This document shows, in pieces, positions 5,857-36,963 of a DNA stretch of 64,000 nt (positions within the stretch are counted from its first letter, which is position 1; each line of letters opens with the position of its first letter). The notes under the pieces are model-generated. The model was not told the origin of the DNA and ran no database searches. It saw nothing but the letters and a program-made list of their open reading frames with translations. The stretch lies in the IMG/VR virus record IMGVR_UViG_3300028558_000016, positions 248,001 through 312,000 of that record. The stretch is one strand, 5' to 3'. Position numbers and translations under genes: made by a program.

Positions 5857-5917
5857 ACCGAAACTTTGCAAAATCTAACTTATAGAATGATTAAACAATC
5901 TAATACAGATATAAACC

Positions 5918-6715: not shown

Positions 6716-6720
6716 TCACA

Positions 6721-7176
6721 ATGAAAAAAGATTTGTTTGTCATAACTGGACTTTCCTGTTTTGCAAGCACGCAAGCTGACGCAAAAAAATTAACTCAAGA
6801 AATGAGAGTTAAATATAGCGGAAGAAACTGCAAGATGACGTTGAAGCGTGTTGTTGACTTAACTGCTAAAAAGATAGAAGAGTCCTCATACTTCATGCAT
6901 TGCGGAAATACTAACTATGATGGTGTTTCGAGTTTTGATCCTTATGTAAAAGGAATCAAACACATTGGCGAAAGCACTAAAGGAATTCCATTATTCATAT
7001 TGGACTCAGAGCAGATAATAAAGGGAGTCATTGTTGAAATGGAGTACAATGTGAAGAAAGTTGTTGGTAAAAAAACAGAAGATCATTTAGTTCCTGTTAA
7101 GGTAGTAAAAATAATAGGATACATGAATGTGGAAAAAGCGCAAAAAACAAAAGATAAAATAACGCCTCTATTTTAG
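6721..7176 (+). CDS. Hypothetical protein
   Basis: Co-oriented ORF, tight spacing. Confidence 0.6.
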   Translation: MKKDLFVITGLSCFASTQADAKKLTQEMRVKYSGRNCKMTLKRVVDLTAKKIEESSYFMHCGNTNYDGVSSFDPYVKGIKHIGESTKGIPLFILDSEQIIKGVIVEMEYNVKKVVGKKTEDHLVPVKVVKIIGYMNVEKAQKTKDKITPLF

Positions 7177-16998: not shown

Positions 16999-17022
16999 AA
17001 AAAGGCCTTCGAGGCCTTTTTT
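16999..17022 (+). terminator. Intrinsic terminator
   Basis: aaaaaggcct-tcg-aggccttttt. Confidence 0.8.
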
Positions 17023-17038
17023 CTTTTAAAATTTTCAG

Positions 17039-17045
17039 ATATATA
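17039..17045 (+). promoter_or_regulatory. Putative late promoter ATATATA
   Basis: Starts the structural-type gene cluster; AATATATA recurs at 26056, 28219, 40936 and 50823 (minus). Confidence 0.45.
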
Positions 17046-17068
17046 CATAAAATATAGACTTCATAACC

Positions 17069-17434: not shown

Positions 17435-18001
17435 ATGAAATACGTAAAACTATTCGAGGGATTTCTCTCTGAAAAAGAATCCGACGAAGAAGTAGACAGC
17501 TTCGGCAACAAGAAGAAAAAGAAAAAGGATGAAGAGGATCCCGGCACTGTTCTTTCCAATACTACTGGAATTGTTACTGCAATGGAAGTAACTGAAGCTA
17601 AAAATGAGGACATCAGCAAATGGGACGACAAGAGAGTTAATAAAATCTATGGATATTACTTAGATGGATTGTCAAACGCAGAAAGAGAAACAGAAGAGAA
17701 AAAGAAATTAAGCGTTGACAAGAAACGTGAAGTGTTGAAGAAGCAACAAGTTAAATTCGAAAAACAGTTCGAGGGATTTCTCTCAGAAGCTGAGGTAAAT
17801 GAAAACAAAAACACGTATCCTTCACATTGGACAAAAGATGATGTAATCACAGTCAATGCCATAAAAATTTCTTTGGAAGATTATGAGAGTCAAGGAGGAA
17901 AGATAACAAAGACATTAATAAAAGATTCCATAAAGGAATTTAAAGTTGATGCAAAAATTAAAAACGAAGTTCAATCGGAATTAGAAGGGATATATTTATA
18001 A
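17435..18001 (+). CDS. Putative internal head protein with two copies of the targeting motif
   Basis: MKYVKLFEGFLSE and internal KQFEGFLSE (DNA repeat ttcgagggatttctctc). Confidence 0.6.
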   Translation: MKYVKLFEGFLSEKESDEEVDSFGNKKKKKKDEEDPGTVLSNTTGIVTAMEVTEAKNEDISKWDDKRVNKIYGYYLDGLSNAERETEEKKKLSVDKKREVLKKQQVKFEKQFEGFLSEAEVNENKNTYPSHWTKDDVITVNAIKISLEDYESQGGKITKTLIKDSIKEFKVDAKIKNEVQSELEGIYL

Positions 18002-18663
18002 TGACTACAACCTACTCATACGGACCGTTAAAGAGCGACTACTTTTCTCAGTATGAGAAGATGTGGATAGAGGGCTTTTGTAAGGAAAACAAGATTGAAC
18101 TCTCTGAGTCCAATGTTTGCACAACCCTTTCAACCATTTTAAAAGGAAAGAGTCCAGAAACGGTTAATGTAAAGATCAAGGCCTTGATTACCGAAGCTGA
18201 GAAGTTCTCAAGCTATTCAAAAGACATGTTCATCAAATCATGGAACAACATCCTTGGATTCACGATGAGCACTGTAAAGCCAAACGGAACAATATCAGAG
18301 AATCAAAGAGAATCGATGAAGCTTACAAATGCTTATTGGCTTATGGAAGCTCCAAAGATCATGTCGCAAGAAATGCAATACGCATACTTCAAGAGCTTAG
18401 TAATAGAATGCCTATCTGAAAATGGAAAAGCATTGAATGAATTAAAGGATTTCAATCCAGCTAAACCAAGCAGAATAGTTGAGAACGCAAAAACATATTT
18501 CTCTTATGAGAAGGTGAAGATGAAATTTCCACCATGCAGCATAAGAACAGAAGAGATAAGAAAGAATGAGGTAGCATTAAACATGATACCAGAAGCTGAG
18601 AAGATTATTGCTATGATCTCGTGGACAGCCGAGACAACAAAACTCATGTCAATGTTCAAATGA
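18001..18663 (+). CDS. Hypothetical protein
   Basis: TAATG-coupled ORF. Confidence 0.6.
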   Translation: MTTTYSYGPLKSDYFSQYEKMWIEGFCKENKIELSESNVCTTLSTILKGKSPETVNVKIKALITEAEKFSSYSKDMFIKSWNNILGFTMSTVKPNGTISENQRESMKLTNAYWLMEAPKIMSQEMQYAYFKSLVIECLSENGKALNELKDFNPAKPSRIVENAKTYFSYEKVKMKFPPCSIRTEEIRKNEVALNMIPEAEKIIAMISWTAETTKLMSMFK

Positions 18664-18974
18664 AACACGTAAAACTATTTGAAGATCATAAACTCGACGA
18701 AGTAACAAGCGCCGAGATATGGAAAGCAGTTGACCAGGCACAGCTCGACGAATACGAGAAGAGCGGACCTAAGGAGTTAACCATCGGAGACATGGAATAT
18801 AAGATAAACAAGTATTGGATGAACGAGAATGACGTCCCTTCGCTTGAGGTGGTCAACAAAGATACAAACAGCGTTCATTATGTTCAGCTGGCATTAGTAT
18901 GGAGCGGATATGTTAATTGGAGCGCATTGGGTCCAAAGGAAAGAGAAGAACTAAGACAAAAATATTTATCGTAA
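18660..18974 (+). CDS. Putative internal head protein
   Basis: Start moved to ATG 18660, giving MKHVKLFEDHKLDE. Confidence 0.6.
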   Translation: MKHVKLFEDHKLDEVTSAEIWKAVDQAQLDEYEKSGPKELTIGDMEYKINKYWMNENDVPSLEVVNKDTNSVHYVQLALVWSGYVNWSALGPKEREELRQKYLS

Positions 18975-18991
18975 CACTTTAAAACAGAAGT

Positions 18992-19150
18992 ATGTCATTC
19001 AATAAGATTTATCTAAGAGATTTAAAAGAAGTAAAGAAAGAATTTTCAGAAGACCCTCAAGGGTTCAAAAGAAGAATGACAAAGGCGGATGCCTTGATAG
19101 GACCGGTAAGCTCGGTAAGGTTCGTGGAAAAAGTAATGAAAACAAAATGA
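18992..19150 (+). CDS. Small hypothetical protein (52 aa, not in the ORF track)
   Basis: MSFNKIYLRDLKE...KVMKTK; ATGA overlap with the next gene. Confidence 0.55.
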   Translation: MSFNKIYLRDLKEVKKEFSEDPQGFKRRMTKADALIGPVSSVRFVEKVMKTK

Positions 19151-19614
19151 AAAGAATATTCTCATACGATTCGTTCTTGAACGAAAGCAGACTGACCGAT
19201 ATGTACGATGAGAGAAAAGAACTCATCCTACAAATTGCTGACATGAGAAAAGATATGGAAAATGATCCAGAAGTCATCGAACAACCGGATGCTTCTGCGC
19301 CAGGATCAAAGGCAGATTGGTATGGTGGAGAATTAGGAAAGCTTGATGCTGAGCTTGAAAAGCTTGAAGCAAAGATAGCAAAGGCCGAAGATAGAAAAAA
19401 CCCGAAAGAATTAACTTACGAAGAAGCAGTGCACATGGATACTATTAAGACAATGAACAAAAACATCGAGGACATCAAAAAGTCTCGAGCAAGCTGGCCT
19501 GACCGATCAATGGAACAGGAAGCTGAAATATATAAGAAGCGTTACGGAATAAACGGAGACATAGAAGGAATAATCTACGCTCTTAAGAAACTACAAGACG
19601 AAAAGAAAATATAA
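19147..19614 (+). CDS. Putative internal head protein
   Basis: MKRIFSYDSFLNE; coiled coil. Confidence 0.6.
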   Translation: MKRIFSYDSFLNESRLTDMYDERKELILQIADMRKDMENDPEVIEQPDASAPGSKADWYGGELGKLDAELEKLEAKIAKAEDRKNPKELTYEEAVHMDTIKTMNKNIEDIKKSRASWPDRSMEQEAEIYKKRYGINGDIEGIIYALKKLQDEKKI

Positions 19615-19621
19615 AACAATT

Positions 19622-20752
19622 ATGGCAAAGAGATTTCACAATTTTGAAGAGTTCATTCTTGAGTCGCAAAAGGCTGAAGAAGCAATCATGTCAGCTTTAA
19701 ACAAGAGGATATGGTCTGAAGTTTTCACAAGCTCTTACTTGACTGAAGCAGAAAAGGTTTGGTTTTCCAATTTCTTAACTGAGAACAACATCCCAGTGGA
19801 CATTGACAACATCAATGAATCTGTTTGGGACACCATCAAGGCAGGAATAGAAAAGGTGAAGGACTCTGGCACTGACATTGGAAAAAAGATCTCTGACAAG
19901 ATAGGAAAAGCTTATCAAGGAGCAAAACAATTCACGGCTTACATCGGAGACCTCATCAAGAAGTCTTGGGCTAAACTATTGGATTACTTCAAAAAGAAAT
20001 TCGCAGGTGTTAAGGACATCATCAAGAAAGATTACAAGAAGGCCGTTGATGGAAAAGAAATTTCAGAAGAAAAATTAGCTGCTGAATTAGAAGCTCTTGG
20101 AGAGACAGTAGATTTCTGGACGACAAAAGTTCCAGCCAAGATAGCTGACACAGTTAAAGGAAAATTCGCTAATGCAATCGTTCAAGAATGTTTAACTCAC
20201 AACGGAGAAATCCTTAATGAGCTTTGCGCATTCGATCCAATTAAAATGGATGAGATGGTGATGAAAGCTTTAAACGAAGCTGACGACAACGCAGATGCAA
20301 ACGATCCTGAGAACAAAGGAGAAGAAGGCGGAGACGCTGCACATGGAGATACCAAAGGATTATTCGGATGGTTGAACAAGATGGCGCACAAGATCTCTGA
20401 GTATCCTCCATTCAAATGGTTACATCAAATAAAAGGATTAGCTGAAAAAGGAGTAAAAGGAATTCTTAAAAAGATTTCTGAACTTACAACTAAATTGGAC
20501 GGTCCTGGAGTTTACGATTTCGCAGTGGTATCAATGATCTCTGCTGGAGCAATAGAATATTTCATTAAGCATTGGCTCGCAGAGAAGCTTGAAAAAGGAG
20601 TGTTTGGTTCTGAACCGATATTGAAGTTCATCCCAATGGGAACAACCATATTACACACTATTGAGTGGATAGCATTGATCGTGCTCATCATAGAAACAAT
20701 CAAGGAATTAACGACCGCTGGAAAAGAAGGGGACGCCGCCCCAGCACACTAA
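19622..20752 (+). CDS. Putative internal/ejected protein with C-terminal hydrophobic helices
   Basis: MAKRFHNFEEFILE; amphipathic helices; hydrophobic C-terminus. Confidence 0.6.
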   Translation: MAKRFHNFEEFILESQKAEEAIMSALNKRIWSEVFTSSYLTEAEKVWFSNFLTENNIPVDIDNINESVWDTIKAGIEKVKDSGTDIGKKISDKIGKAYQGAKQFTAYIGDLIKKSWAKLLDYFKKKFAGVKDIIKKDYKKAVDGKEISEEKLAAELEALGETVDFWTTKVPAKIADTVKGKFANAIVQECLTHNGEILNELCAFDPIKMDEMVMKALNEADDNADANDPENKGEEGGDAAHGDTKGLFGWLNKMAHKISEYPPFKWLHQIKGLAEKGVKGILKKISELTTKLDGPGVYDFAVVSMISAGAIEYFIKHWLAEKLEKGVFGSEPILKFIPMGTTILHTIEWIALIVLIIETIKELTTAGKEGDAAPAH

Positions 20753-20754
20753 GC

Positions 20755-21963
20755 ATGAAACGCATAAAGAGATTCGAGAGCTACATAAGTGAGTCTTATC
20801 TCGGAGGCTCTCGTGCTCCGCTGTATCACACTTCTCCAATCACAAACTCATATAGCATTTTACAGGAGGACAAACTAAAGTCCACTGTGATCCCTGACAA
20901 ATTTTGGTCGGCTGATTTTCCAGCTCCATCTCTAATATCATTCACAAGAAGCAAGGAATTCGTGTATGAGGATTACCCTGTCACGTTCATCGTTGACGGA
21001 GATAAATTGGAAGCAAGATTCAAAGTTCATCCAATAGATTATTTTGCAAAGACCGTTGGGCATCACATGAAGCCTAAAAGTCTAAGACAAGAAGGAGAGT
21101 TTGAATTTGAGGAAGCCGTACAGAACAAAGAAATAAACGATCTTCACAAGTACTTAATGGAGATTCGTCTAAACGATTCCTTCTTCATGTTCTATAAAAC
21201 ATATCCAAGAAACACAAGAGAAGAATATAGAGAATCATACGAAGACCTCGTTAAAGGTTTGATAGAATACAAGAAGAAGTTTAACACCAAGGTGGTTCGC
21301 AAGAACGGTAAGGAATGGACTCTTGATGACATGGAGAATGAAGCATCTGAATTCCCTATAACAGAAAACATATATCACAAAGACTCTGGAATGAGAATGT
21401 ACGTCAGCAAGGCTGCTGATGAAGACGATTACAAGGTTTATTATTCCTCATACAATCCAATGGGTGGATTCGACTCAGACACATTTTCTAAATACCTTAA
21501 CACAAACGGAATTGAGCACACAAAGATTGGTGGCAATGCCGTAAAGATGAACAAGGCCAACGTTGACAAATTAAAGAAGAGCATGCTAACTCTCGAGAGC
21601 TTAAAGGATGGAAAGGCGTTGACAAAGGCTGAGATAAATAAGATAGAATATTTTTACCATGCAACTGCCAAGAGCAATCTTGGAAACATAATGGCAAACG
21701 GAATTAGAGTTGGACCTGAGAAAGTTGTTTACCTCAGCGACACGTACGATAATGCAGCAAGATTTTTGGTGTTCAGAGGATTACCGATAATAGTATTCAA
21801 GGTAAAGGCTTCCAAGCTTAACATGGAGAAAATGGAAGAAAGCTTTGATCACAGTTATAGCTTCTTCAAGTGTCATGCATTCATGTATTATGGAAACATA
21901 CCAAAGAGTGCCATTGATTACGATTCAATAATGAAATACAACGATGAAGATAAAGAGGTTTAA
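20755..21963 (+). CDS. Putative internal head protein with two ADP-ribosyltransferase-like domains
   Basis: MKRIKRFESYISE; LYH...ISFTR...EFEE; C-terminal YHAT...IMANGI...VYLS...IP (Tpt1/KptA-like). Confidence 0.55.
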   Translation: MKRIKRFESYISESYLGGSRAPLYHTSPITNSYSILQEDKLKSTVIPDKFWSADFPAPSLISFTRSKEFVYEDYPVTFIVDGDKLEARFKVHPIDYFAKTVGHHMKPKSLRQEGEFEFEEAVQNKEINDLHKYLMEIRLNDSFFMFYKTYPRNTREEYRESYEDLVKGLIEYKKKFNTKVVRKNGKEWTLDDMENEASEFPITENIYHKDSGMRMYVSKAADEDDYKVYYSSYNPMGGFDSDTFSKYLNTNGIEHTKIGGNAVKMNKANVDKLKKSMLTLESLKDGKALTKAEINKIEYFYHATAKSNLGNIMANGIRVGPEKVVYLSDTYDNAARFLVFRGLPIIVFKVKASKLNMEKMEESFDHSYSFFKCHAFMYYGNIPKSAIDYDSIMKYNDEDKEV

Positions 21964-22393
21964 TAATTTCATAAACGAAGAAGCTTCAACGTTGATTCCT
22001 GTAGTGAGATGGGCATCAAAGAAATACACCGCAGAAGAGTTGAAGCCTCAGAAGTTTGATTGGGGAGGATTCGAATCATTCGGTCTTTGCTTCACTCCTT
22101 TTAATGGTATGGAAGATCCAAGGATAAACTTCTGGAAGAAATTATTACAGAAGCATCACAACAAGGAATTGGTTGCTAATTTTTATTACCTCGATCTTTC
22201 CGACTTCCCGTTGAAGTCAGAAGCAGCATTGGTTGATTTCGCAAAGCTTACATATAATTCATTGAAGGCTGAACGAATGATGAAGACTGATTATAAGATA
22301 CACATGACTCTGACGAATGACTTTGGAACGGCACAGCTCGTTGAGATAAGATTATTGGAAGGTTGCACCATAAAAATATTGGACTACAAGTGA
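21944..22393 (+). CDS. Putative internal head protein
   Basis: MKIKRFNNFINEE. Confidence 0.55.
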   Translation: MKIKRFNNFINEEASTLIPVVRWASKKYTAEELKPQKFDWGGFESFGLCFTPFNGMEDPRINFWKKLLQKHHNKELVANFYYLDLSDFPLKSEAALVDFAKLTYNSLKAERMMKTDYKIHMTLTNDFGTAQLVEIRLLEGCTIKILDYK

Positions 22394-23175
22394 AGAAGAT
22401 AAAAACATATAACAATTTTCTATTAGAAAAAAAGATGGAAGCCTTTGTTGAGATTGCTAAACGCAACAACATGACAGAGGACTGCATGCATCTCGTTGTT
22501 TGGTGGGGACTAACCGGATATTTATATTACCACGGATTGCATGATAAGAATCCACCGATCACTAAAGAAGGAAAGAGAATGCTTAAAGTAATTTTTGATT
22601 CAGTGGTGAACGGAACTTATTCCGATTACATGAACCAAAGAATAACAGCAGAAGACGAGGATAACGATCCAATAGTTATGGAAGAAAACGTCTATAAGCA
22701 GATGGGAAAGAATTACATTGATGACACGTTCAATGCCAACCTTGTTGAATTGAAACACCCAATTAAAGTTTTCAAGGATTATTCCAAAGACAGATTTGTG
22801 ACTGGAAAAGATACTGCATGGTATTCATTCTCTGTAATAAAGGGGAGAGACCAAAACGCTTACGGAGATGCTTATATCTGTTACGAGCTTCCAGCAGGAT
22901 TCAAGTATCTCGATACAAGAGGCCTTGCAGAAAAAGGAGAGATACTCATAGACGGCAAAGACTTAACAGATGACATGATAATAAGCAATTCAAGCGAGAT
23001 GAAGATAGACCTTAAGAAAGGCGATGAGATATTAACTGGCAAGTGGCAGAACAAACATGATGAGGTTAAAAAGGTTGGAAAGAATGAATTAGGCCAACCA
23101 ACTATAAATGGTAAACCAATGTTGAAGTTCAGAATAAAGAGATTGATGCCAAAGAAAAAGAAGTCTGAAGAATGA
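22390..23175 (+). CDS. Putative internal head protein, possibly Alt/VIP2-like ART fold
   Basis: GTG start gives MKKIKTYNNFLLE; WYSFS...YG...EKGEILI resembles S-x-S and E-x-x-I/L motifs. Confidence 0.45.
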   Translation: MKKIKTYNNFLLEKKMEAFVEIAKRNNMTEDCMHLVVWWGLTGYLYYHGLHDKNPPITKEGKRMLKVIFDSVVNGTYSDYMNQRITAEDEDNDPIVMEENVYKQMGKNYIDDTFNANLVELKHPIKVFKDYSKDRFVTGKDTAWYSFSVIKGRDQNAYGDAYICYELPAGFKYLDTRGLAEKGEILIDGKDLTDDMIISNSSEMKIDLKKGDEILTGKWQNKHDEVKKVGKNELGQPTINGKPMLKFRIKRLMPKKKKSEE

Positions 23176-24173
23176 GACGCATAAAGCTATATGAAGAATT
23201 TGTCGTTCAACTCAATGAGCTGAACGCAAGTCCTTATTTCTGGAGATGGGACACCAACAAGACTGCAAAGTTTGAATCGCCTGACGATACTTACGAAGTA
23301 TTCTTCTTTAAAACCAAAGACGACAACACATACATAGCACATTACGAATCAAAGAAATACGGAACAAACAAATCAGGACCTGGATCAACAGGAAATGCAA
23401 TGAGAGTTCTTGCAACTGTAATGGACATCATAATAGCTTTCCTTGATCAGTTTCCTGAATACGACGTTGAATTCGTAGGAGACAAAGAAGAAGACGAGAA
23501 AGATGGTCCAACCAAGAGAGACAGAATATACAAGATGATGATGCAAGATCTTCCAGACAATTACAAATGGGAACTCGCATCAGACAAGAAAACAATTCAC
23601 ATAAGCAGGCAACACGTTTACGAAGACGTTAGCGGAATTGGTGGTGAAACATTCTACCATGGATCAACTGACAAGAATTTAGCTGGTCACAAGGGATTGC
23701 ATGTAGGAACTCGTGAGGCAGCAAAGGAAGCTCTTGAAGCAAGGATAGGAGTTCCAGCTGAAGGAGAATGGGATGGAACAAGAGAATATGGAAAGACTCT
23801 ATTAGCAGGACAAGACAGATTGAACAAGATAGAGAAGGAAGAAAAAAGATATGTGGCAACAGGTTTCAATTGTGGAAGCGATGTGCCAAAAGAAGATTAC
23901 TATCCGACAGACAGAAAGGAAAAAGCAACATACAGCGATGAGTCTGTTGTTCCAATGAACTGCAAGCCAATAATATTTCCAGTTAAAATAGTCGGTCACA
24001 TGACAAACACGCCTCAGCATCCATTGAGCGATTCCAAAGCGAATGGATTGATGAAAAGAAGCTTGACGGCAGGAAATGCTAAGAGCGGATTCTATTACAA
24101 GAACATCGGAGAGGACGAAGGGTCTATATCAGCTGTCGTTCCGGATAAGTCTTTCTTGAAACTTACCACTTAG
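23172..24173 (+). CDS. Two-domain putative internal head protein; C-terminal ART-like domain
   Basis: MRRIKLYEEF; TGNAMRVLATVMDII domain; FYHGST...GLHVGT..AA. Confidence 0.55.
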   Translation: MRRIKLYEEFVVQLNELNASPYFWRWDTNKTAKFESPDDTYEVFFFKTKDDNTYIAHYESKKYGTNKSGPGSTGNAMRVLATVMDIIIAFLDQFPEYDVEFVGDKEEDEKDGPTKRDRIYKMMMQDLPDNYKWELASDKKTIHISRQHVYEDVSGIGGETFYHGSTDKNLAGHKGLHVGTREAAKEALEARIGVPAEGEWDGTREYGKTLLAGQDRLNKIEKEEKRYVATGFNCGSDVPKEDYYPTDRKEKATYSDESVVPMNCKPIIFPVKIVGHMTNTPQHPLSDSKANGLMKRSLTAGNAKSGFYYKNIGEDEGSISAVVPDKSFLKLTT

Positions 24174-26090: not shown

Positions 26091-28211
26091 ATGAACGGTG
26101 CTCAATTAAAAATCAAACAAATCAAGGGTCTCAACGCAGAGCTCGCTGATAAGCTTTCAAAGAGTTTAGGCGGAACTGTTACCGGACCATTGACGATAGG
26201 TGGACCATTAGTGGTCACTGGGCCAACCATCATAAACACTGATCTTTCTTTACAAGGAGCTATAGTGGATTTTTATGGAAGTCCTGGACCTCCAGGATGG
26301 GTGCTAACCTCCACAGGAACAGCAACACAATGGGTGGATCCTTTAGGACCATTAGGTGTTTCAGGATTTAGTGGAACATCAGGTATCTCAGGTTACAGCG
26401 GAACATCAGGTGTTTCTGGTTACACAGGTGTAAGCGGTTATTCAGGTGTAAGCGGATTCTCTGGATATTCCGGAGACAGCGGTACAAGTGGAACAACAGG
26501 TATTTCAGGAACAAGCGGTGTTTCAGGTTTTTCTGGATACTCAGGCGTATCAGGATACTCTGGAACTTCTGGTATTTCAGGAACGAGCGGTATAAGTGGA
26601 ACAACAGGTGTAAGCGGATTTTCAGGATACACTGGAGCTTCAGGAACTTCTGGATTTACTGGTGTGTCAGGTTTTTCTGGATACTCAGGCGTGAGTGGTT
26701 TTTCTGGATACACAGGAACTTCTGGTATTTCAGGAACAAGCGGTATTAGTGGAACTTCTGGAATTTCTGGATACAGTGGTGTTTCAGGTTTTTCTGGTGT
26801 TAGTGGATGGTCAGGATCAAGCGGTATTTCTGGATTCAGTGGTTATTCAGGTGTAAGTGGATTCACAGGTGTGAGCGGTTACACTGGTGTTTCTGGATTC
26901 ACTGGAACTTCTGGTATTTCTGGATCATCTGGATATTTTGGACAAGATGGTATGTCAGGTTTTTCTGGATTCTCTGGATTCGGAATTTCTGGTTACTCAG
27001 GATATTCTGGAAACAATGGAGTTGCCGGTGGAGCTTTATACTATTTAAGAGATGAAGACTCAGATGTCCCAGGCTTTAAAGAATTAGATATAAATCCAGA
27101 TGGAATAGATCCTGAAGGATCTTATACAGCTGCTTGCGATAATACAACCGGCGAAGTATTAATAAAACAATTCTTAACTTTTCCATCAAACCCAGATCAG
27201 CTTTATATTTCAGGTGGTTCATGGATATTCGATACTTATGCCTCAGTAGACAACTCAGGCGGAGTTTCAAATATCGTAATAAGATTTTACAAGAGAGATC
27301 AATTTGGTATTGAGACTGAATTGTTCAACGTAACGACTGCAGAGATAAATGTCGTATCTCCTACATTATTTTCAAAAGAAATTCTCCAAGGAGAATTCAA
27401 TATAGCATTAACTGATAGATTATTAGTAAAGTATTTTGCAAAAACTACTTCAACGACAACAATTAACGTCAGCATTTATTTAGAAGGAAATACGCATGCA
27501 ACACATATTCACTCTCCTGTATCTTTCATAGGAGCTTCAGGTTTCTCTGGATGGTCAGGTTTTAGTGGAACTTCAGGAACTTCTGGATTCACAGGAGTTT
27601 CAGGATTTACGGGTGTGAGCGGATATAGCGGTGTTTCAGGTTTTTCTGGTGTAAGCGGATTCACAGGTGTCAGTGGTGTTTCAGGTTTCTCTGGATATTC
27701 TGGAACAAGTGGAACATCTGGTTATAGTGGAACATCTGGTTTTTCAGGCGTGTCAGGTTACTCTGGAACTTCTGGATTCTCTGGATATTCTGGAACATCA
27801 GGCTTCACAGGCGTCAGCGGTTTCTCAGGTATTTCTGGAGACTCAGGTGTTAGCGGATTCACAGGAGCAAGTGGAACATCCGGTTTTTCAGGCGTGTCAG
27901 GTTACTCTGGAACTTCTGGATTCTCTGGATATTCTGGAACAAGTGGAACATCCGGTTATAGTGGATTTAGCGGAGTTTCTGGATATTCTGGTGTAAGTGG
28001 ATTCTCAGGTGTTTCAGGATTTAGCGGATACTCAGGAACATCCGGATTCTCTGGTTACAGCGGAACAAGTGGATTTACCGGTGTCAGTGGATTCAGCGGC
28101 GTTAGCGGATTTTCAGGAACCTCTGGATTATCTGGAACTTCTGGATTTTCAGGAACCTCTGGATTTGATGCAGGTATTCTTGCATTGATCATCAATAGTC
28201 TTGGCTTGTAA
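26091..28211 (+). CDS. Collagen-like (Gly-X-Ser)n fibre protein with a central globular domain
   Basis: Two long [12 protein letters not shown] tracts flanking a roughly 170 aa beta-rich domain. Confidence 0.75.
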   Translation: MNGAQLKIKQIKGLNAELADKLSKSLGGTVTGPLTIGGPLVVTGPTIINTDLSLQGAIVDFYGSPGPPGWVLTSTGTATQWVDPLGPLGVSGFSGTSGISGYSGTSGVSGYTGVSGYSGVSGFSGYSGDSGTSGTTGISGTSGVSGFSGYSGVSGYSGTSGISGTSGISGTTGVSGFSGYTGASGTSGFTGVSGFSGYSGVSGFSGYTGTSGISGTSGISGTSGISGYSGVSGFSGVSGWSGSSGISGFSGYSGVSGFTGVSGYTGVSGFTGTSGISGSSGYFGQDGMSGFSGFSGFGISGYSGYSGNNGVAGGALYYLRDEDSDVPGFKELDINPDGIDPEGSYTAACDNTTGEVLIKQFLTFPSNPDQLYISGGSWIFDTYASVDNSGGVSNIVIRFYKRDQFGIETELFNVTTAEINVVSPTLFSKEILQGEFNIALTDRLLVKYFAKTTSTTTINVSIYLEGNTHATHIHSPVSFIGASGFSGWSGFSGTSGTSGFTGVSGFTGVSGYSGVSGFSGVSGFTGVSGVSGFSGYSGTSGTSGYSGTSGFSGVSGYSGTSGFSGYSGTSGFTGVSGFSGISGDSGVSGFTGASGTSGFSGVSGYSGTSGFSGYSGTSGTSGYSGFSGVSGYSGVSGFSGVSGFSGYSGTSGFSGYSGTSGFTGVSGFSGVSGFSGTSGLSGTSGFSGTSGFDAGILALIINSLGL
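26352..27010 (+). repeat. Coding 9-nt-period Gly-X-Ser repeat tract (limits approximate)
   Basis: Translation [14 protein letters not shown]... Confidence 0.85.
27531..28165 (+). repeat. Coding Gly-X-Ser repeat tract containing an exact 60-nt direct repeat
   Basis: 27738-27797 is identical to 27882-27941 (144 nt apart). Confidence 0.85.
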
Positions 28212-28233
28212 AGATCAAAATATATAAAAGAGA

Positions 28234-29001
28234 ATGATCAGGTTAGACACAGTAAATAAGTCGATTAGAATTTATTCGGATGCTACAGCAACTACGAATG
28301 AACCAAATTATGCAACATCATGGGATGACATAAGAGTGGTAAACCCGCAGTTCACGCCAGGCAGTCAAGATGGAGCTTTAAATGGAACAACGCCGATTGC
28401 AGTAATTTCTGCGCCGGCTTCTTCAATATACAGAAATATAAAATACATCCATGTTGCGAATGTAGACACAGTTCAACACGTAATAACAGTTGAGCTTTTA
28501 AATAATGGAACACAAAGAACTCTTTTAAAAGTAACGCTTGGAATAGGAGAAGAATTAATATTCAACGATGGTTCTGGCTGGATGACGTTAGACAATATTG
28601 GCGAACTGAAAATCACCGGTAATTCCGGAGCTAACATCAAGGTTGGTCAAATAGGTTTCGGCATCGATAACAATGGAAGTGTATTAACAACAGGAACAAA
28701 AGCTTATGCAGTAGTCCCTTTCTCAGGAACGATAGTCTCATGGGAATTGTTTTCAGATGTTGCAGGAAACGTTGTGATAGATGTTTGGAAAGCTCCCTAT
28801 GCGAGTTATCCGCCAACAGTGGCAAACACCATAACAGGAACAGATAAGCCAACGCTCTCTTCTCAACAGAAGAATGTTGACACGGTTCTTACTGGATGGG
28901 GAAACCAAGTAGTCAATGCAGGAGATATTTTTGCGTTCAATATAGATTCAGTATCAACGATAACGAGACTCAACGTGAGCCTCAAAATAATTAAAGACTA
29001 A
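28234..29001 (+). CDS. Virion/fibre-associated protein, paralog of 31300..32691
   Basis: Shared roughly 130 aa N-domain MIRLDT.NKS.RI.SDATATT.EP; C-domain DVWKAPYASYPPT. Confidence 0.7.
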   Translation: MIRLDTVNKSIRIYSDATATTNEPNYATSWDDIRVVNPQFTPGSQDGALNGTTPIAVISAPASSIYRNIKYIHVANVDTVQHVITVELLNNGTQRTLLKVTLGIGEELIFNDGSGWMTLDNIGELKITGNSGANIKVGQIGFGIDNNGSVLTTGTKAYAVVPFSGTIVSWELFSDVAGNVVIDVWKAPYASYPPTVANTITGTDKPTLSSQQKNVDTVLTGWGNQVVNAGDIFAFNIDSVSTITRLNVSLKIIKD

Positions 29002-29005
29002 AAGC

Positions 29006-31132
29006 ATGTCAAAGAAAGCAATAGATTTCGTATTCACAGGAGCAACCACACCAATCGCTTCTTACGATTCAACAAAGACCAACATTGGAACTTTGATCAA
29101 ACAATATACAGGAGCTCTCGCAACAGATAAGTTTGCAGGCCCAGAAATAGTTTCTGTCGCAAGACCAGGTGAAGCTTCCACTTCCATATTCGGAGGATTT
29201 CCATATATCGTACAATTTTCTACGACAATTGATTGGGTTTTCCTTGCAGAAAACTCTGCTGCCGCTGTGACAAGAAGAATAATCTGGTATGAATTTAATA
29301 AGACTACTCAAGTCTTTACGTGGAAAGGATTCATCACACTAACATACCCAGCTGCGACCGCACACACCATAAGAGGTTTAAGCGTAACAAAAGATAATTA
29401 CACCACTGGAACTGTAGCCGTCTCAGGAACTACTGTGACTGGAACAGGTTCTTTATGGTTAACTGAACCACAATCATTAGGTTCAAGAATAGGATTTGGA
29501 ACAACCGATCCAACCGCTGTAACAACGTGGTTTGAAATCTCTGCTATAGGATCAGACACATCCATAACATTAACATCAACTGCAGGAAGCATACCTGCTG
29601 GAACTGCTTATGTCATTGAAGATTTAAGAGTCTATACTGCGACAACAAATGCTACATTAACCAATGGCGGTTTATTTGTTACTAAAGGTTTAAGAATAGA
29701 AAACTTTTCAACGGGTGGAACAACAATTTCAGCTGCTGTAACAACCGATAACATAAGAGCTGTTTACTGGTTGGCTGATGCTTCAACTGTCACAAATACT
29801 GTAGCAGGTGGTTTATATGTCGACACGAGATCTTCATGGACTAACCAAGTTGCTTACATCGTCAACGTGACAGCTGCGACAACTCCAGCTATTTATGTCT
29901 ATAATACAAGAGCAGCCTTAACGCTTGCCGCAGGAAAAGACACAACAACAAACACCATAAAGACCGGAGTTCAAACCGTAACAGGTAACGTTTCTCAGGT
30001 AGGAAATGGAATTCTTGCAACGCTTTCTCATGGACCCGGTTCAGGAGTTAAGTGTCTTTATTTTGCAACAACCTCAAGAATAATCAGAGTAGACCTTGCA
30101 AATATTACCGCAGCTTCTACAACTTTCGTATCAGACTCGATGGTTGAGGTTCCACCAGGATCTTCGACAACATATCCTTTGACTGCAGTAATGTCTCATG
30201 TTTTATATTCTTCGATGATCGACAGACTTGTAATTCTTACGACCTCAGCAGCAGGACAAAGAGGTTATGTTACACAATACAACACGACCTCAGCACAATT
30301 CGATCACATATTTTTAATAGATGACAAGAACCAGGATCAATCAACTGCTGCGGTAGGATCAATTCCTTATCCATCTCTTTCAAACACGCAGATGGTAGGA
30401 GGGATGCTAAATGGAAGAATGTTTATTGTAAGAAACTCTGCTGCGGCAACTTTAAACCAGATGTACAATCTTCCAATAGGAGCACATTGGGCTTATACTT
30501 CTACATCAAATCAGGTCTTGATAACTCCAAGCATTCCAACAACGAATGCCTTGAAATTCTATAGACTTTATGTAAACGAGATAAAAAGATTAGGAACAGA
30601 TCCTTATGTAATTCAACCGGAACCTTACAAAATGTATGCAAGAACTTCTGGTATTTCTACAAATTTAGGAACATGGACTCTCATAAACGATGATGGAGAT
30701 CTTTCAGGATTAACACCTACTTCCGAAATACAAATCAAATTGGAATTCAACATTCTTGGAAGATATTGCATTCCTTCGAGAATAATGTCTTTGGCAGTCG
30801 TCTTTGAAGACACCACGACGGATTCACACTATGAACCTTCTATCGCGAACTCGAATGTTTCTACAAACGTATTCGCCTTCAGACAATCAACGGCTTTCGG
30901 ATCAAACATCCCTAACTTAAGGATTCAATTGTTCAACGCTGTAACAGGAGTTCCTATAATAGATGACAACGTAACGTCTTCAGCTTTTGGAACTTTCCAG
31001 TATTCTTCTAACAACGGATTATCGTGGAATGCATGGAGCAATACCCAGGATGTTGTAGGAAATTACATAAGATATACAGCAACTTCTCTGCCAGGATCTA
31101 CGAGAATTAGAGCTCTATTGACGCAAGCATAA
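29006..31132 (+). CDS. Large Thr-rich beta-structured virion/tail protein
   Basis: 708 aa, T/S/G/A-rich; YTTGTVAVSGTTVTGTG tail-protein-like motif. Confidence 0.65.
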   Translation: MSKKAIDFVFTGATTPIASYDSTKTNIGTLIKQYTGALATDKFAGPEIVSVARPGEASTSIFGGFPYIVQFSTTIDWVFLAENSAAAVTRRIIWYEFNKTTQVFTWKGFITLTYPAATAHTIRGLSVTKDNYTTGTVAVSGTTVTGTGSLWLTEPQSLGSRIGFGTTDPTAVTTWFEISAIGSDTSITLTSTAGSIPAGTAYVIEDLRVYTATTNATLTNGGLFVTKGLRIENFSTGGTTISAAVTTDNIRAVYWLADASTVTNTVAGGLYVDTRSSWTNQVAYIVNVTAATTPAIYVYNTRAALTLAAGKDTTTNTIKTGVQTVTGNVSQVGNGILATLSHGPGSGVKCLYFATTSRIIRVDLANITAASTTFVSDSMVEVPPGSSTTYPLTAVMSHVLYSSMIDRLVILTTSAAGQRGYVTQYNTTSAQFDHIFLIDDKNQDQSTAAVGSIPYPSLSNTQMVGGMLNGRMFIVRNSAAATLNQMYNLPIGAHWAYTSTSNQVLITPSIPTTNALKFYRLYVNEIKRLGTDPYVIQPEPYKMYARTSGISTNLGTWTLINDDGDLSGLTPTSEIQIKLEFNILGRYCIPSRIMSLAVVFEDTTTDSHYEPSIANSNVSTNVFAFRQSTAFGSNIPNLRIQLFNAVTGVPIIDDNVTSSAFGTFQYSSNNGLSWNAWSNTQDVVGNYIRYTATSLPGSTRIRALLTQA

Positions 31133-31150
31133 AAATAAAATATTAAAAAT

Positions 31151-31300
31151 ATGCCAGTAGATGATATAGTTTTCCAAAGCAATCCACCATTCATTTTAGA
31201 AGTTCCCGCACAGACACCAGGAACAATAAGAGCATTATCGCTTGATGGAGTATTCGATTTTACAAATGCTACTGAAATAATAACGATTCAAATCAGCTAA
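31151..31300 (+). CDS. Small protein (49 aa, not in the ORF track)
   Basis: MPVDDIVFQSNPPF...ITIQIS; TAATG-coupled to the next gene. Confidence 0.5.
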   Translation: MPVDDIVFQSNPPFILEVPAQTPGTIRALSLDGVFDFTNATEIITIQIS

Positions 31301-32691
31301 TGATTAGATTAGACACCATAAACAAATCACTAAGGATCTTCTCAGATGCCACAGCAACGACAACAGAACCAGTCTTTGTTACGGCATTCGATGACATCAA
31401 TTCCACGACTCCGGTGTTAACGCCTGGAAGCAGTGATGGTGCAACTGTTGGAAATACTCCACAAACTGCAGTAGCTTCTCCGGTAGCTTCCATCTACAGA
31501 AATGTAAAATATGTAAACGTATTCAACAGTGACACAGTTTCACACGTCATCACCGTTGAACTATTAAACAATGCTACCACCAGAACCTTAATAAAAGTAA
31601 CACTTAAAACGAGTGAGCAATTAATATACAATGATGGAGATGGCTGGGGAGTTATCACAGCTTTAGGAGAAAAGAAAGTAACCGGTGTTTCAGGATTCAG
31701 TGGATTCTCAGGAGTTTCTGGAATTGGAACCTCAGGATTTTCTGGATATTCTGGAGTAAGCGGCTTCTCAGGTGTTTCAGGTTTTTCTGGAATTTCTGGA
31801 TATTCCGGTGTTTCTGGATTCTCTGGAACCTCAGGATTTTCTGGATATTCTGGAGTAAGCGGTTATTCTGGTGTCAGCGGATTCTCTGGTTATTCTGGAG
31901 TTTCTGGATTTACTGGAGTCTCCGGACAAACAGGTGTTTCGGGTTTCTCTGGAATTTCTGGTCAATCTGGCGTTAGCGGATTCACAGGAGTTTCTGGATT
32001 TTCCGGCTACACAGGCGTTTCAGGTTTTACGGGTGTTAGCGGATTTTCAGGCATTTCTGGTGATTCAGGTGTTAGTGGTTTTACTGGATATTCTGGAATT
32101 TCTGGATACAGCGGAACTTCCGGTTTCTCTGGATATTCTGGAATAAGTGGAACTTCAGGCATCTCAGGTTTTACAGGAGTAAGCGGTTACACAGGTGTTT
32201 CAGGTTTCACGGGAGTCAGCGGATTCTCTGGATATTCTGGAGTGTCGGGCTATTCCGGAACTTCAGGATTCTCAGGTTATTCCGGTACTTCCGGCTTCAC
32301 AGGAACCTCAGGTTTTTCTGGAATTTCTGGAGATCCTTCTCTTGGATTAATCACAATGAGAGCATCAAGAGCTTCAGCAAATACCACAAACATTTATCTG
32401 AGAGATATGGATGGCAATCCAATGAACCAAGCTCCTTTGGTGATGCCATACAATGGAACGATAATAAATATTTCTGCATCATCTAACACTGCTGGTCCTG
32501 GCGCATGGTCTGCAGAAGTAAGAGATAATGGAACTTTAATAGCAGGAGCAGTGATAAATATGACAGCAGTTCAAACATCAAACTTTGGAACATATTCGGT
32601 GAACGTTAATGCTGGTGCACTTCTAATGATATTCATGACAGGAACTTCCATAGATAGACCTGCAATAACAGTATTAATAAAGAGAAGATAA
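31300..32691 (+). CDS. Collagen-like (Gly-X-Ser)n fibre protein
   Basis: Paralogous N-domain, repeat tract at about 31684-32331, C-terminal beta domain. Confidence 0.75.
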   Translation: MIRLDTINKSLRIFSDATATTTEPVFVTAFDDINSTTPVLTPGSSDGATVGNTPQTAVASPVASIYRNVKYVNVFNSDTVSHVITVELLNNATTRTLIKVTLKTSEQLIYNDGDGWGVITALGEKKVTGVSGFSGFSGVSGIGTSGFSGYSGVSGFSGVSGFSGISGYSGVSGFSGTSGFSGYSGVSGYSGVSGFSGYSGVSGFTGVSGQTGVSGFSGISGQSGVSGFTGVSGFSGYTGVSGFTGVSGFSGISGDSGVSGFTGYSGISGYSGTSGFSGYSGISGTSGISGFTGVSGYTGVSGFTGVSGFSGYSGVSGYSGTSGFSGYSGTSGFTGTSGFSGISGDPSLGLITMRASRASANTTNIYLRDMDGNPMNQAPLVMPYNGTIINISASSNTAGPGAWSAEVRDNGTLIAGAVINMTAVQTSNFGTYSVNVNAGALLMIFMTGTSIDRPAITVLIKRR

Positions 32692-32699
32692 ACATATAA

Positions 32700-34937
32700 A
32701 TGGCTCCATATTTTAAAATAACTACAACAGGAACAAGCCCATCAACGGTCATTTTATATGATCTTGGTGAGAGAACTTTTACACATCCTACTGTAGATTT
32801 AGATCTTCTTTTAGAATTTTCTTTAGAAGAAATCCAGAATTCTCTGGATCTTATTACTGCAATAGATGCTGGAAGATTAACGGCAAATTTAGACGGAACA
32901 TCCGTAACTACTGCCGATCAATTCTATGCAAACCTCACGAGCGTTTCAGGATATTCTGGAATAAGTGGAACTTCAGGATTCTCTGGATACTCAGGGGTTT
33001 CTGGATATTCTGGAACTTCTGGAATAAGTGGAACATCAGGAATTTCTGGATATTCCGGAGTTTCTGGTTACACGGGCGTTTCAGGTTTTAGCGGCGTATC
33101 AGGTTTTTCTGGCGTAAGCGGATGGTCAGGAACATCGGGAATTTCTGGGTTTAGTGGAATTTCTGGATGGTCGGGAACAAGCGGAATTTCAGGAACCTCT
33201 GGTATTTCAGGAACTTCAGGAGTATCCGGATTTTCAGGAACCTCTGGATATTCTGGAACTTCCGGCTTCTCAGGTTACTCAGGAACCTCAGGTTTTTCTG
33301 GATATTCTGGAATAAGTGGAACATCAGGAATCTCCGGATTTTCTGGAGTTTCAGGTTTCACTGGAGTATCTGGTCTATCGGGTTTCTCTGGAAAAGCAGA
33401 CAGATATTTAACTTCCTCAACAACTTCTTTAACGATACCTGTTGGATCTCCAGCAGTGCAAACATTAACCGTTGAAGCAGGATTAGCATATTCAGTTGGA
33501 CAAGGCATTGTAGTTGCAAATGATTCAACACATTTATTCACAGGAGAAGTTCAATCTTACAATAATGTTTCTGGAGTTTTAGTTGTTATAGTTCAAACAG
33601 AATTAGGAACAGGAACATTTACTTCATGGACAGTTAACCTCGACGGAGTTCAAGGCGTTCAAGGAAATTCCGGTATTTCTGGATTTTCTGGAATAGCCGT
33701 ATCAGGTTTCTCTGGATATTCTGGTGTTAGCGGTTTTAGTGGAGTTTCTGGATTTACAGGAGTTTCTGGTTATTCTGGCTTCACAGGAGTTTCAGGATTC
33801 AGCGGATATTCTGGTGTGAGCGGTTACAGTGGAACATCAGGATTTTCTGGTGTTTCAGGTTTTTCAGGTTACAGCGGAGTCTCTGGATTTTCTGGAGTTT
33901 CAGGTTATTCTGGAACATCAGGCGTTAGCGGATTTTCAGGAATTAGCGGATATAGTGGAACTTCAGGTTTCACAGGAACTTCAGGCGTATCAGGTTATTC
34001 AGGCGTATCAGGTTTCACGGGAGTCTCCGGATTTAGTGGATATTCTGGTGTTAGCGGATTCACAGGTGTGAGCGGTTATTCCGGATTTTCTGGTGTGAGC
34101 GGTTACAGTGGAACATCGGGTTACTCAGGAACTTCCGGTTATTCTGGAACTTCTGGTACATCCGGTTTTTCGGGAGTTAGTGGATATTCTGGAGTTTCAG
34201 GATTTACCGGAGCTTCAGGTGTCTCTGGATTTAGCGGTGTTTCTGGTTACAGTGGAACATCAGGATTTAGTGGATATTCTGGAGTGAGCGGATATAGTGG
34301 AACTTCCGGTTTCTCTGGATATTCCGGTGTTTCAGGTTATTCTGGAGTTTCAGGATTTACCGGAGCTTCAGGTGTTTCAGGATTCACTGGAGCAAGCGGT
34401 GTTTCAGGTTTTTCAGGCGTGAGTGGATTCTCTGGATATTCTGGAGTTTCTGGATTCTCAGGTACATCTGGAAAGAGCGGATTTTCTGGAGTTTCTGGAA
34501 ATCCTCCGACATCTTCTTATGCAGAAATGTACATGACTGGTAATGGAACTGCGACAGCAGTTGTTACTGTTTCTGTTCCATTAAAAGTTGCAGGAACTAC
34601 GACAGCAGGAGATAAGACTTCTGATTGGACCCATGCTTCTAATAAGCTAACATATACCGGAACAACTACACAGGAGTTCTTCTTGAATGTTTCTTTCTCA
34701 GCAAATTCTGCTTCGGCTTCAAAGAGCTTTAGCTTCTTTGTTTACAAGAATGGTTCAGCTGTTTCAAAGTCTCAGATCAATAACTTCTTAAGAAGTTCTG
34801 GTGATGATTTTGCTGGAGGCGTTTCATGTTTGATCTCTTTAGCAACAAATGATTTTGTTGAACTGTGGACACAGAACAATACTTCGGCATCGGATGTTAC
34901 GGTATCTTATATGAATTTTAACCTTACAAGAATATAA
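32700..34937 (+). CDS. Collagen-like (Gly-X-Ser)n fibre protein with a C1q/TNF-like head
   Basis: Two repeat tracts around [13 protein letters not shown]...GLAYSVGQ; C-terminal [13 protein letters not shown]. Confidence 0.75.
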
Positions 34938-34938
34938 A

Positions 34939-36963
34939 ATGAGGATAGCAGTTTTAAATAGCGACGGATTAAAGACCACACAGGACGATCAGCTTAAGTA
35001 TTATTTTACTGTGGCAGATGGAACAGTTTTTCCAGGATCTCCTGCGATGACTGATGTTACTTCGCCAGATACTTTATATCTTTTCTTCAGATTTAATAGA
35101 CTCGATTATTTTATTTTTAAAGCTTCTGCTGTGTTATATGTGATTCCGAATTGGAATAGTTTGACATCGATTCAACAGGGTTATTATACGTCGAATTACA
35201 TATTTCCAGGTGGCCATACTATATTAGATTATTATACGCAAACAGAAGTATATGAACTTAATCAGGATTTATTTTTAAGACCAGACGTAGTTTCTTTTGA
35301 TCCTACGTTGTTGACTGCTCCACTTGTCATACAGCTTCCAGATACTGGATTGACTGGAAAAATGATTACTACTCAGAACTTATCTGATGGTATCGGAGCA
35401 TCGGGAGTTTCTGGATTTACGGGAGTTTCTGGTAAAAGTGGAGTATCTGGTTATTCTGGATTTACGGGAGTTTCTGGTTTTTCTGGATACAGTGGAGTAT
35501 CAGGTTTTTCTGGATATTCTGGAATAAGTGGTTACTCTGGAACATCCGGTTATTCTGGATTTACGGGAGTATCTGGATATTCTGGAGCTTCAGGAACATC
35601 CGGTTTGCAAGGTCCTAATGGACTTTCTGGTGTTAGCGGTGTTAGCGGTTATTCAGGAGTTTCGGGCTTCTCTGGGGTCTCAGGATTCAGTGGGTCTGGT
35701 GTTTCTGGGTTTAGCGGTTATTCAGGTGTTAGCGGTTTTAGTGGGTATTCTGGAGTTTCCGGTTTTTCAGGAACTTCAGGTGTTAGTGGATTTTCGGGGA
35801 TCGGGACATCTGGATTTACGGGGGTTTCTGGATTTAGTGGTTACTCAGGGGTTTCTGGTTTTTCTGGAATTAATGGAACTAATGGTACAAATGGAACATC
35901 TGGTTTTTCTGGTGTTAGCGGATATTCAGGAACTTCTGGAATAGGAACTTCAGGTTTTTCTGGAATAGGAACATCTGGTTTCTCTGGATATTCTGGAGTT
36001 AGTGGATATTCCGGAGTTTCAGGATACACTGGAACTTCTGGAGCAACTGGTCCAACAGGAACTTCAGGATTTAGTGGATATTCAGGTGTTAGTGGTTACT
36101 CAGGTGTTAGTGGATTTACAGGAGCTTCCGGTGTTTCCGGTTTTTCAGGAGCATCTGGGAAATCTGGTTTCTCTGGTACTAATGGAACTAACGGTGCTGT
36201 TGGAACTTCTGGAACTTCCGGATTTAGTGGTTACACAGGTGTATCTGGATTTTCAGGAATTAATGGAACTAACGGAACTTCAGGTTTCTCTGGAACAAGT
36301 GGAGTTTCAGGATTTAGTGGTTTCTCTGGAAAATCTGGATTCTCAGGAACTAACGGAACAAATGGTGCTGCAGGTACTTCTGGAACTTCAGGTGTTAGCG
36401 GATTTTCTGGAGTCATTGCTCCTGTCTTGACGACCAAAGGAGATATATTAACTTTTTCAACAGTGAATGCAAGATTACCTGTTGGAACTAATGGACAGAT
36501 ATTGTTTTCGGATTCTACACAAACTAACGGAATTAAATGGTCTAATGGAGCAAATGCACAATCATCTCCTACAGATCCAGCGACAACAGCTTCAACAACT
36601 GGTGTTATGATGGGATTAGCAGGAACTATCACACCGGTTACAACAGGAACTATAATGGTAATTATTTCTGGAGATTATGATATTACTGGAACAGGAGATT
36701 CAGGCCAAATTCAAATGAGAACAGGAACAGGAACAGCTCCTACAAATGGAGCTGCTTTAACAGGAACTACAAGAGGTGGTCTCGTTAAATTTTTAAATGG
36801 ATCAAGTGCACCGGCTTCTTCAAAAAGAGAAGCATGGAGTTTAAATTGTATAATAACAGGATTGACAGTTGGAACAGCAGTATGGATCGATGTAAGTCAG
36901 GCTTCTCCATCAGGTGGTACTTTTAGAGCAAGGGACATAAGCATCTCAGCAATTGAAATATAA
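34939..36963 (+). CDS. Collagen-like (Gly-X-Ser/Asn)n fibre protein
   Basis: Repeat tract at about 35395-36410; LTTKGDIL...RLPVGTNGQIL fibre motif; C-terminal beta head. Confidence 0.75.
   Translation: MRIAVLNSDGLKTTQDDQLKYYFTVADGTVFPGSPAMTDVTSPDTLYLFFRFNRLDYFIFKASAVLYVIPNWNSLTSIQQGYYTSNYIFPGGHTILDYYTQTEVYELNQDLFLRPDVVSFDPTLLTAPLVIQLPDTGLTGKMITTQNLSDGIGASGVSGFTGVSGKSGVSGYSGFTGVSGFSGYSGVSGFSGYSGISGYSGTSGYSGFTGVSGYSGASGTSGLQGPNGLSGVSGVSGYSGVSGFSGVSGFSGSGVSGFSGYSGVSGFSGYSGVSGFSGTSGVSGFSGIGTSGFTGVSGFSGYSGVSGFSGINGTNGTNGTSGFSGVSGYSGTSGIGTSGFSGIGTSGFSGYSGVSGYSGVSGYTGTSGATGPTGTSGFSGYSGVSGYSGVSGFTGASGVSGFSGASGKSGFSGTNGTNGAVGTSGTSGFSGYTGVSGFSGINGTNGTSGFSGTSGVSGFSGFSGKSGFSGTNGTNGAAGTSGTSGVSGFSGVIAPVLTTKGDILTFSTVNARLPVGTNGQILFSDSTQTNGIKWSNGANAQSSPTDPATTASTTGVMMGLAGTITPVTTGTIMVIISGDYDITGTGDSGQIQMRTGTGTAPTNGAALTGTTRGGLVKFLNGSSAPASSKREAWSLNCIITGLTVGTAVWIDVSQASPSGGTFRARDISISAIEI

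Follow-up and report, generated by a model that had tools for sequence, protein, structure and literature searches.

A double ADP-ribosyltransferase-fold protein encoded in a run of tagged genes from a 482-kb phage

The DNA analysed here, called the window below, comprises 64,000 nucleotides (bases 248001-312000) of the 482,156-bp IMG/VR virus record IMGVR_UViG_3300028558_000016, with a G+C content of about 37%. It contains a run of closely packed genes, four of which, named A to D, are the subject of this report (Table 1; coordinates are those of the window unless marked as genome). At the fold and profile level, gene A encodes a protein with two ADP-ribosyltransferase (ART) domains, and each of the four products opens with a peptide resembling the capsid targeting sequence (CTS) of phage T4. 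We read the run as a capsid-cargo operon of a T4-related phage, in which A is a double ART-fold protein, D possibly carries an ART- or RES-type domain and the nature of C is unverified. The probability of this reading is, in our estimate, about one half. A known counterpart is T4 Alt, a packaged and injected mono-ADP-ribosyltransferase of the R-S-E type.

A first-pass annotation had described the same genes as tagged cargo proteins with up to four ART-like domains. The motifs on which it drew were all found: LYH (residues 23-25), ISFTR (61-65), EFEFEE (115-120), YHAT (301-304), NGI (315-317), VYLS (325-328) and NIP (381-383) in A; VFKDY (127-131, containing K129), WYSFS (144-148) and EKGEIL (181-186) in C; FYHGST (161-166) and GLHVGT (175-180) in D. 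Structure prediction and fold search, which it had suggested be done domain by domain, returned an ART fold for both proposed domains of A and weak RES/ART-type neighbours for residues 159-333 of D. Of the four proposed domains, the two of A thus hold, that of D is a possible third, and that of C is a candidate from short motifs. Pfam searches with the four proteins gave nothing above the cut-offs, and NCBIfam gave only sub-threshold Tpt1 matches. Genome-wide, no Pfam match to ART-PolyVal, ADPrib_exo_Tox or DarT was detected.

Table 1. Position of the tagged run, its genes and their parts in the window.
Feature	Position	Strand	Description	Basis
Gene run	17435..24173	+	Tightly packed, most genes with CTS-like tag	Open reading frame list, translations, tag regular expression
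Gene A	20755-21963	+	402 aa, tagged, two ART-fold domains	
Tag of A	20755..20793	+	MKRIKRFESYISE, ends I-x-E	Regular expression
A, N-terminal ART-fold domain	20794..21312	+	Residues ~14-186	Fold match, family conservation
A, middle domain	21352..21609	+	Residues ~200-285, function not known	AF2 secondary structure
A, C-terminal mini-ART domain	21619..21954	+	Residues 289-400, like the NAD lobe of Tpt1/KptA	Profile, fold
Gene B	21944-22393	+	149 aa, tagged, no recognisable domain	
Gene C	22390-23175	+	261 aa from GTG start; tag, rare core (~15-203), 57-aa basic module	
C, lysine-rich module	22999..23169	+	57 aa, residues 204-260	Sequence identity
Gene D	23172-24173	+	333 aa, tagged, GNAT/DUF6934-like half and conserved 175-aa domain	
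Tag of D	23172..23219	+	MRRIKLYEEFVVQLNE, ends L-x-E	Regular expression
D, N-terminal half	23220..23621	+	Residues ~17-150, DUF6934/GNAT-like fold	Sub-threshold Pfam match, structure match
D, C-terminal domain	23646..24170	+	Residues 159-333, family opening FYHGST..GLHVGT	Homologue family

The two ART-fold domains of A

The C-terminal domain of A adopts the split beta-sheet, NAD-binding ART fold. PHROG searches with A found phrog_38345, whose function is not known (3.7e-14), and the RNA 2'-phosphotransferase family (1.5e-4), and phmmer reached P. horikoshii Tpt1 at E 0.0023. Many stand-alone proteins of this mini-ART type, about 100 amino acids (aa) long, were recovered by a whole-library HMMER search. 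A profile of 75 mini-ART homologues matched ten Tpt1 structures (best E 1.2e-6); in Pfam, 32 of the 75 matched PF01885 weakly, seven matched PARP and three Tox-ART-HYE1. The fold is therefore that of an ART, of the kind seen in the NAD lobe of Tpt1, and the label Tpt1/KptA-like, given to the domain in the first-pass annotation, is borne out for that lobe by both profile and structure matches. Residues conserved in the family are H302, T304, Y326, R341, D365, H366 and C373. In the alignment, H302 and T304 fall on the HGT motif of Tpt1, Y326 on the His of VHLS and R341 on R133 of PhoTpt1 (residue roles, including the catalytic tetrad, are from PMC10622864).

Membership in the Tpt1 family itself was ruled out, since the RNA lobe is absent, the catalytic tetrad is not kept and scores lie under the curated cut-offs (12.5 versus 26 bits for PF01885, 21 versus 239 bits for NCBIfam). 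The domain further differs from Tpt1/KptA in its size, in the large number of homologues that stand alone, and in an E-S-F-D-H-S and a Cys motif of its own. Homologues in cultured phages are annotated as RNA 2'-phosphotransferase (Streptococcus phages Dp-1 and MS1) or as PARP domain (Faecalibacterium phage FP_Epona). Among side observations, a structure search of the ESM Atlas with residues 288-402 gave as a neighbour a cluster of Tad6, a Thoeris anti-defence protein, at a very low template modelling (TM) score of 0.23-0.25, and one mini-ART homologue had a marginal Acb3 match in Pfam (E 0.06). A weak second match to the mini-ART lies outside the window, in a 292-aa open reading frame (genome 204643-204834, + strand).

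The N-terminal domain, residues ~14-186, likewise adopts an ART fold. Across 31 aligned members of its family R65 and E119 are invariant, and Y24, H25, S62, D81, K84, E117 and E120 are nearly so. Pfam and other sequence searches assigned the domain to no known family, and its profile gave no ART match among PDB sequences. One relative, P0056, has a weak DarT match (16.6 bits versus a cut-off of 22.5). DarT uses H13/T15, R51, Y71 and E160, and both R51 and E160 are required (PMC9967889); the His-to-Arg spacing is 40 residues in A (H25-R65) versus 38 in DarT (H13-R51). On its sequence, the domain reads as an H-type ART with a DarT-like Arg/Glu set, the residue equivalences being putative.

As a member of Pfam DarT (PF14487) it was rejected, no match being present in the genome at E<=10. 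A also differs from DarT in a shorter Arg-Glu region and in being phage-borne and tagged. Moreover, no DarG-type antitoxin (macro or NADAR) adjoins A, whose neighbours are tagged genes without known function. A Macro-domain gene, whose product could reverse ADP-ribosylation, lies some 250 kb from A (genome 21417-21782, - strand). A second tagged paralogue of the N-terminal domain is found outside the window (genome 432854-433381, - strand). A 1200-aa metagenomic relative, P0156, contains six separate copies of this domain, with sub-threshold matches to Tox-ART-HYD1 (7.2e-5) and PARP.

Both domains of A are thus of the H type (Tpt1/DarT-like) and not of the R-S-E type, in agreement with the earlier suggestion of ART classes other than that of Alt. 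A and T4 Alt have in common that an ART-fold enzyme is among the presumed head cargo; the class of the fold is where they differ.

Between the ART domains lies a middle domain that is missing from P0152 and from the A homologue of L007, a 12.9-kb NCBI metagenome contig that is a syntenic relative of the region. In that homologue (5765-6748, 327 aa) the N- and C-terminal ART domains are joined directly, so that the two-ART architecture appears as the conserved unit. Part of its C-terminal ART domain is a masked run of N, and the source called no gene there. The AF2 fold of A was obtained from a composite alignment, A4; another, A3, was dropped as MAFFT had aligned some of the stand-alone mini-ARTs to one YH motif of A and some to the other.

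The N-terminal tag and the case for packaging

The products of A, B, C and D all begin with M[KR]xIKx[FY][EN]x[FY]..(L/I)xE (consensus MKHIKLFExFLNE). A loose regular expression for this tag matched 34 times genome-wide, compared with 0-2 times in five codon-shuffled genomes. The tagged reading frames (~34) form several clusters, for example at genome 147415-158484, 202676-206082 and 458040-476812. Tagged starts in the run are at 17435, 18660, 19147, 19622, 20755, 21944, 22390 and 23172; those at 18660, 19147 and 22390 carry looser variants read by eye, and the others come from the regular expression, which matched in the window at 41086 as well. In other metagenomic phages, the A and D homologues open with a tag of the same type, and some longer proteins contain tag-like stretches internally, between domains. 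Gene C has the tag only when read from the GTG at 22390; the ATG at 22435, 15 codons downstream, which is the start chosen by gene callers and in the ESM Atlas, loses it. The GTG start is supported by the C homologues P0122 and P0123, whose tag is encoded from an ATG at their beginning.

The tag is real and T4 CTS-like. In the T4 CTS, targeting depends on aromatic residues at positions 4 and 7, and cleavage by the prohead protease on residues 8 and 10 (PMC9026906). The phage tag shares with the T4 sequence MKTYQEFIAE the spaced aromatic residues and an (L/I)xE processing-type site; compared with the internal proteins of T4 that carry a CTS, it is longer (13-16 aa) and heads ~34 genes. The head biology is also of the T4 type. 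Elsewhere in the genome lies a T4-type Peptidase_S77 prohead protease gene (PF03420, 30.8 bits, exceeding the cut-off), and a gp23-like major capsid protein (PF07068, E 6.5e-44) is encoded next to it. The tag, the protease and the capsid protein together make packaging and injection a reasonable inference, and to that extent support the earlier description as tagged cargo.

In the mechanism that we propose, the 13-16-residue tag, ending (L/I)-x-E, opens each product, most likely carries it into the prohead core and is most likely removed by the S77 protease. The mature proteins would then enter the host together with the DNA. Because the nearest solved relatives of both A domains act on nucleic acids, A is most likely nucleic-acid-directed or NAD+-hydrolysing: it would use host NAD+ to ADP-ribosylate DNA or RNA, on a base or a terminal phosphate, or would hydrolyse NAD+. 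Its target would differ from the RNA polymerase arginines modified by T4 Alt. The conserved domain of D may be a strongly derived NAD+ enzyme of the ART/RES type, for which the indications are weak.

Stops and starts overlap or abut in the run, and A to D fill their interval on the + strand. Just 5' of the tagged genes, a terminator-like hairpin (16999-17021, 10-bp stem) is followed at once by a promoter-like site (17025-17053). The run is probably one operon. The gene order A-B-C-D and the two-ART architecture were found again in L007, where B is syntenic.

Genes D and C and the genomic setting

The N-terminal half of D has a Pfam match of 3.2e-5, under the cut-off, and matches a DUF6934 cluster of the Atlas at TM 0.70. 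The same fold recurs at one end of large phage proteins with Zeta-toxin, ParB, deaminase or ART-PolyVal domains, among them proteins of Atu_ph07, and this DUF6934/GNAT-like module may be a common carrier or adaptor.

The C-terminal domain of D (175 aa) had 344 metagenomic matches, most of them 60-75% identical, and none among GenBank phages. Usually the D-type domain makes up a whole protein of ~190 aa that bears the same tag; in some cases it is fused into one polypeptide with ART-PolyVal, GNAT or A-N-type domains at its side. Domain shuffling of that kind is typical of injected polyvalent effectors (PMC9503650). Neither a PDB profile match nor, in 71 members, a Pfam match was obtained. In hhalign comparisons with alignments A1, A2 and ART-PolyVal only the YHG[ST] motif was aligned, and searches with D of AFDB clusters, BFVD, the Atlas and, a second time, VIA returned matches to the N-terminal half only.

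The ESM model of residues 159-333 came nearest to RES (TM 0.49) and ART-PolyVal (TM 0.44) clusters, and the language-model features of a stand-alone D-type member were nearest ART-PolyVal clusters (0.90). The best solved structural neighbours were RES-domain toxins, NAD+-degrading members of the ART superfamily, with the whole domain covered (105 aa). D differs from them in its larger domain, an insert of ~75 aa and many family-specific invariant residues, and no sequence signal links the two. In our reading of the predicted secondary structure, the order beta1 (with the His)-beta2-helix-insert-beta3-helix-beta4-beta5-beta6, the insert being that of ~75 aa, fits an ART core with an insertion. 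The domain was rejected as ART-PolyVal (PF18760), since 0 of 71 members match at E<=1; in P0059, P0086 and P0034 the D-type domain adjoins a PF18760 match and does not lie under it. From the models, it is possibly a derived ART/RES-type domain.

The core of C is shared only by P0122, P0123 and P0304. An IMG/VR scan with C gave no relatives of the core, which also had no PDB profile or Pfam match. No hhalign match was found to alignments A1, A2 and A7 or to a small ART-PolyVal alignment; the only strong matches came from extra domains of P0122 and P0123, outside C itself. The ESM Atlas model was unusable (predicted local distance difference test score 0.45). In all four family members K129, W144-S148 (including S146 and S148) and E184 are invariant, so that the Lys noted earlier at the position of the R-S-E Arg holds throughout the family. 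As a canonical R-S-E ART of the Alt, Mod or cholera-toxin type, C was rejected on the Arg position. Its EKGE is not E-x-E.

Many metagenomic phage proteins that are otherwise unrelated have N-termini with 85-91% identity to the lysine-rich module that closes C, and the uncultured 642-kb phage LR756502 has a match to it as well. The module may be a small basic internal protein or propeptide unit. Elsewhere the module is followed by a tag-like F..F(L/I).E and then by a GNAT domain, by ParB and an R-S-E-looking tail, or by a DarT-like domain; in the window it stands directly before the tag of D.

A DNA search of the region against 50,697 GenBank phage records found no match. Protein-level relatives are uncultured huge phages of 636-642 kb (LR756502, LR756504), and fold-level relatives point to the jumbo Agrobacterium phage Atu_ph07. 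The genes upstream of the tagged cluster serve replication and recombination and include a fragment of a DNA polymerase and a UvsX-like recombinase; collagen-like tail-fibre genes lie downstream. The polymerase reading frame (7730-8944, 404 aa) matches family-B DNA polymerases in their C-terminal part only (PHROG positions 491-839 of 856), which suggests a split or fragmented gene. The interval 26091-36963 holds several very long genes of collagen-like G-x-S/T triplets (tail-fibre PHROGs), and differs in composition from the rest of the window, with G+C up to 0.416 and a reversed AT skew.

Alternative readings and what the cargo may mean

Several observations weigh against the capsid-cargo reading given at the outset. 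We infer packaging, tag cleavage and injection from the genes of a phage known from its metagenomic record, and the T4 late-promoter motif TATAAATA is not enriched. The ART reading of gene C comes from short motifs and is unverified. In the C-terminal domain of A, the structure matches at a root mean square deviation of 2 (VIA) span residues ~85-180 of the Tpt1 chain only, and the RNA lobe is missing. The first three residues of the Tpt1 tetrad fall in that lobe, and the distal catalytic Arg (R115 of PhoTpt1) aligns with Glu in A and with Asp in the family consensus. The chemistry of this domain cannot be read off Tpt1.

That A alone carries ART domains, and that the conserved domain of D and the core of C have unrelated folds and show the short YHG[ST] or S-x-S / E motifs by coincidence, is a serious contender, if short of probable. 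Residues 159-333 of D, like C, lack support from hidden Markov models, profile-profile comparison and Foldseek, and the His of YYHG in C is Asn in P0304. For D, however, two independent models (ESMFold and AF2) both give RES/ART-type neighbours, the language-model neighbours agree, and so does the six-strand order as we read it. The ART-fold domains might alternatively be repair or counter-defence enzymes and not toxins, clearing 2'-phosphate RNA left by host anticodon nucleases, or destroying or diverting NAD+-derived immune signals. Tpt1 is the nearest solved relative of the C-terminal domain of A, with the phosphotransferase annotation of the Dp-1 and MS1 homologues pointing the same way; KptA has been reported in jumbo phages within RNA repair (PMC9503650), and archaeal Tpt1 has NAD+ glycohydrolase activity (PMC10622864). 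We consider this improbable, given the loss of three of the four tetrad residues with the RNA lobe, the replacement of the fourth, a score far below the equivalog cut-off, and the position of A among tagged cargo genes and not among RNA ligase or 2H genes.

Less probable still is a non-catalytic role, in which the ART-like domains would bind NAD+, ADP-ribose or proteins and so block NAD+-using host defences, or would be plain internal head proteins. The C-terminal domain of A shows no evident third catalytic residue of the canonical kind, C has Lys where R-S-E enzymes need Arg, and the neighbours of A include the cluster of Tad6, for which binding to ThsB has been reported (PMC13728456). That structural match is very weak, however, and in dozens of divergent homologues of the two A domains the polar residues expected at the NAD site are invariant, so that catalysis fits better than mere binding. 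As for the shared N-terminus, it could be some other localisation signal, or a recombination or translation-initiation cassette of a hypervariable gene family whose proteins act in the infected cell. The case for packaging is genomic, the tagged genes form several clusters distant from the head genes, and the cluster of the window stands between replication and tail-fibre genes. However, the IP and alt genes of T4 also lie outside its head gene cluster. The tag fits the T4 CTS pattern down to its (L/I)xE site in a genome with a T4-type prohead protease, and the tag-like stretches between domains of longer proteins are as expected of protease sites; we give this alternative little credence.

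Returning to the capsid-cargo reading, head-packaged ARTs beyond T4 Alt have already been proposed, and many ARTs occur in jumbo phages, with at least 10 in Bacillus phage G (PMC9503650). A parallel in design is that of the polyvalent proteins with ART-PolyVal (PF18760; Iyer et al. 2017, 2022), which likewise combine varied effector domains and are presumed to be injected; in related metagenomic phages, single polypeptides mix D-type, A-N-type, GNAT, ParB and ART-PolyVal domains. Here, in contrast to one giant protein, the domains are mostly spread over small genes that are tagged one by one, and none of A, C and D matches PF18760. What is new are the ART class, which belongs to the nucleic-acid-directed branch of the superfamily, the presence of two such domains in tandem within a protein, the apparent use of a tag to load the products of many small and separate genes, and the D-type domain.

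A bolder version holds that a huge phage delivers a DarT/Tpt1-like double enzyme that ADP-ribosylates host nucleic acid at infection, and that the D-type domain is a new family of NAD+-using, ART/RES-derived effectors confined to uncultured huge phages. We regard this combination as rather unlikely. If true, bacterial anti-phage toxin chemistry would have been turned against the host. The D-type domain is a well-defined target: its sequence is highly conserved, metagenomes contain it in abundance, cultured phages lack it, and no structural neighbour of it is clear. If the capsid-cargo reading is confirmed, the run would offer a directly testable example of ADP-ribosylation of DNA or RNA deployed by a phage as a weapon. 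It would also supply a natural catalogue of the effectors that a 482-kb phage injects, and a short portable tag usable for protein loading, like the T4 CTS.

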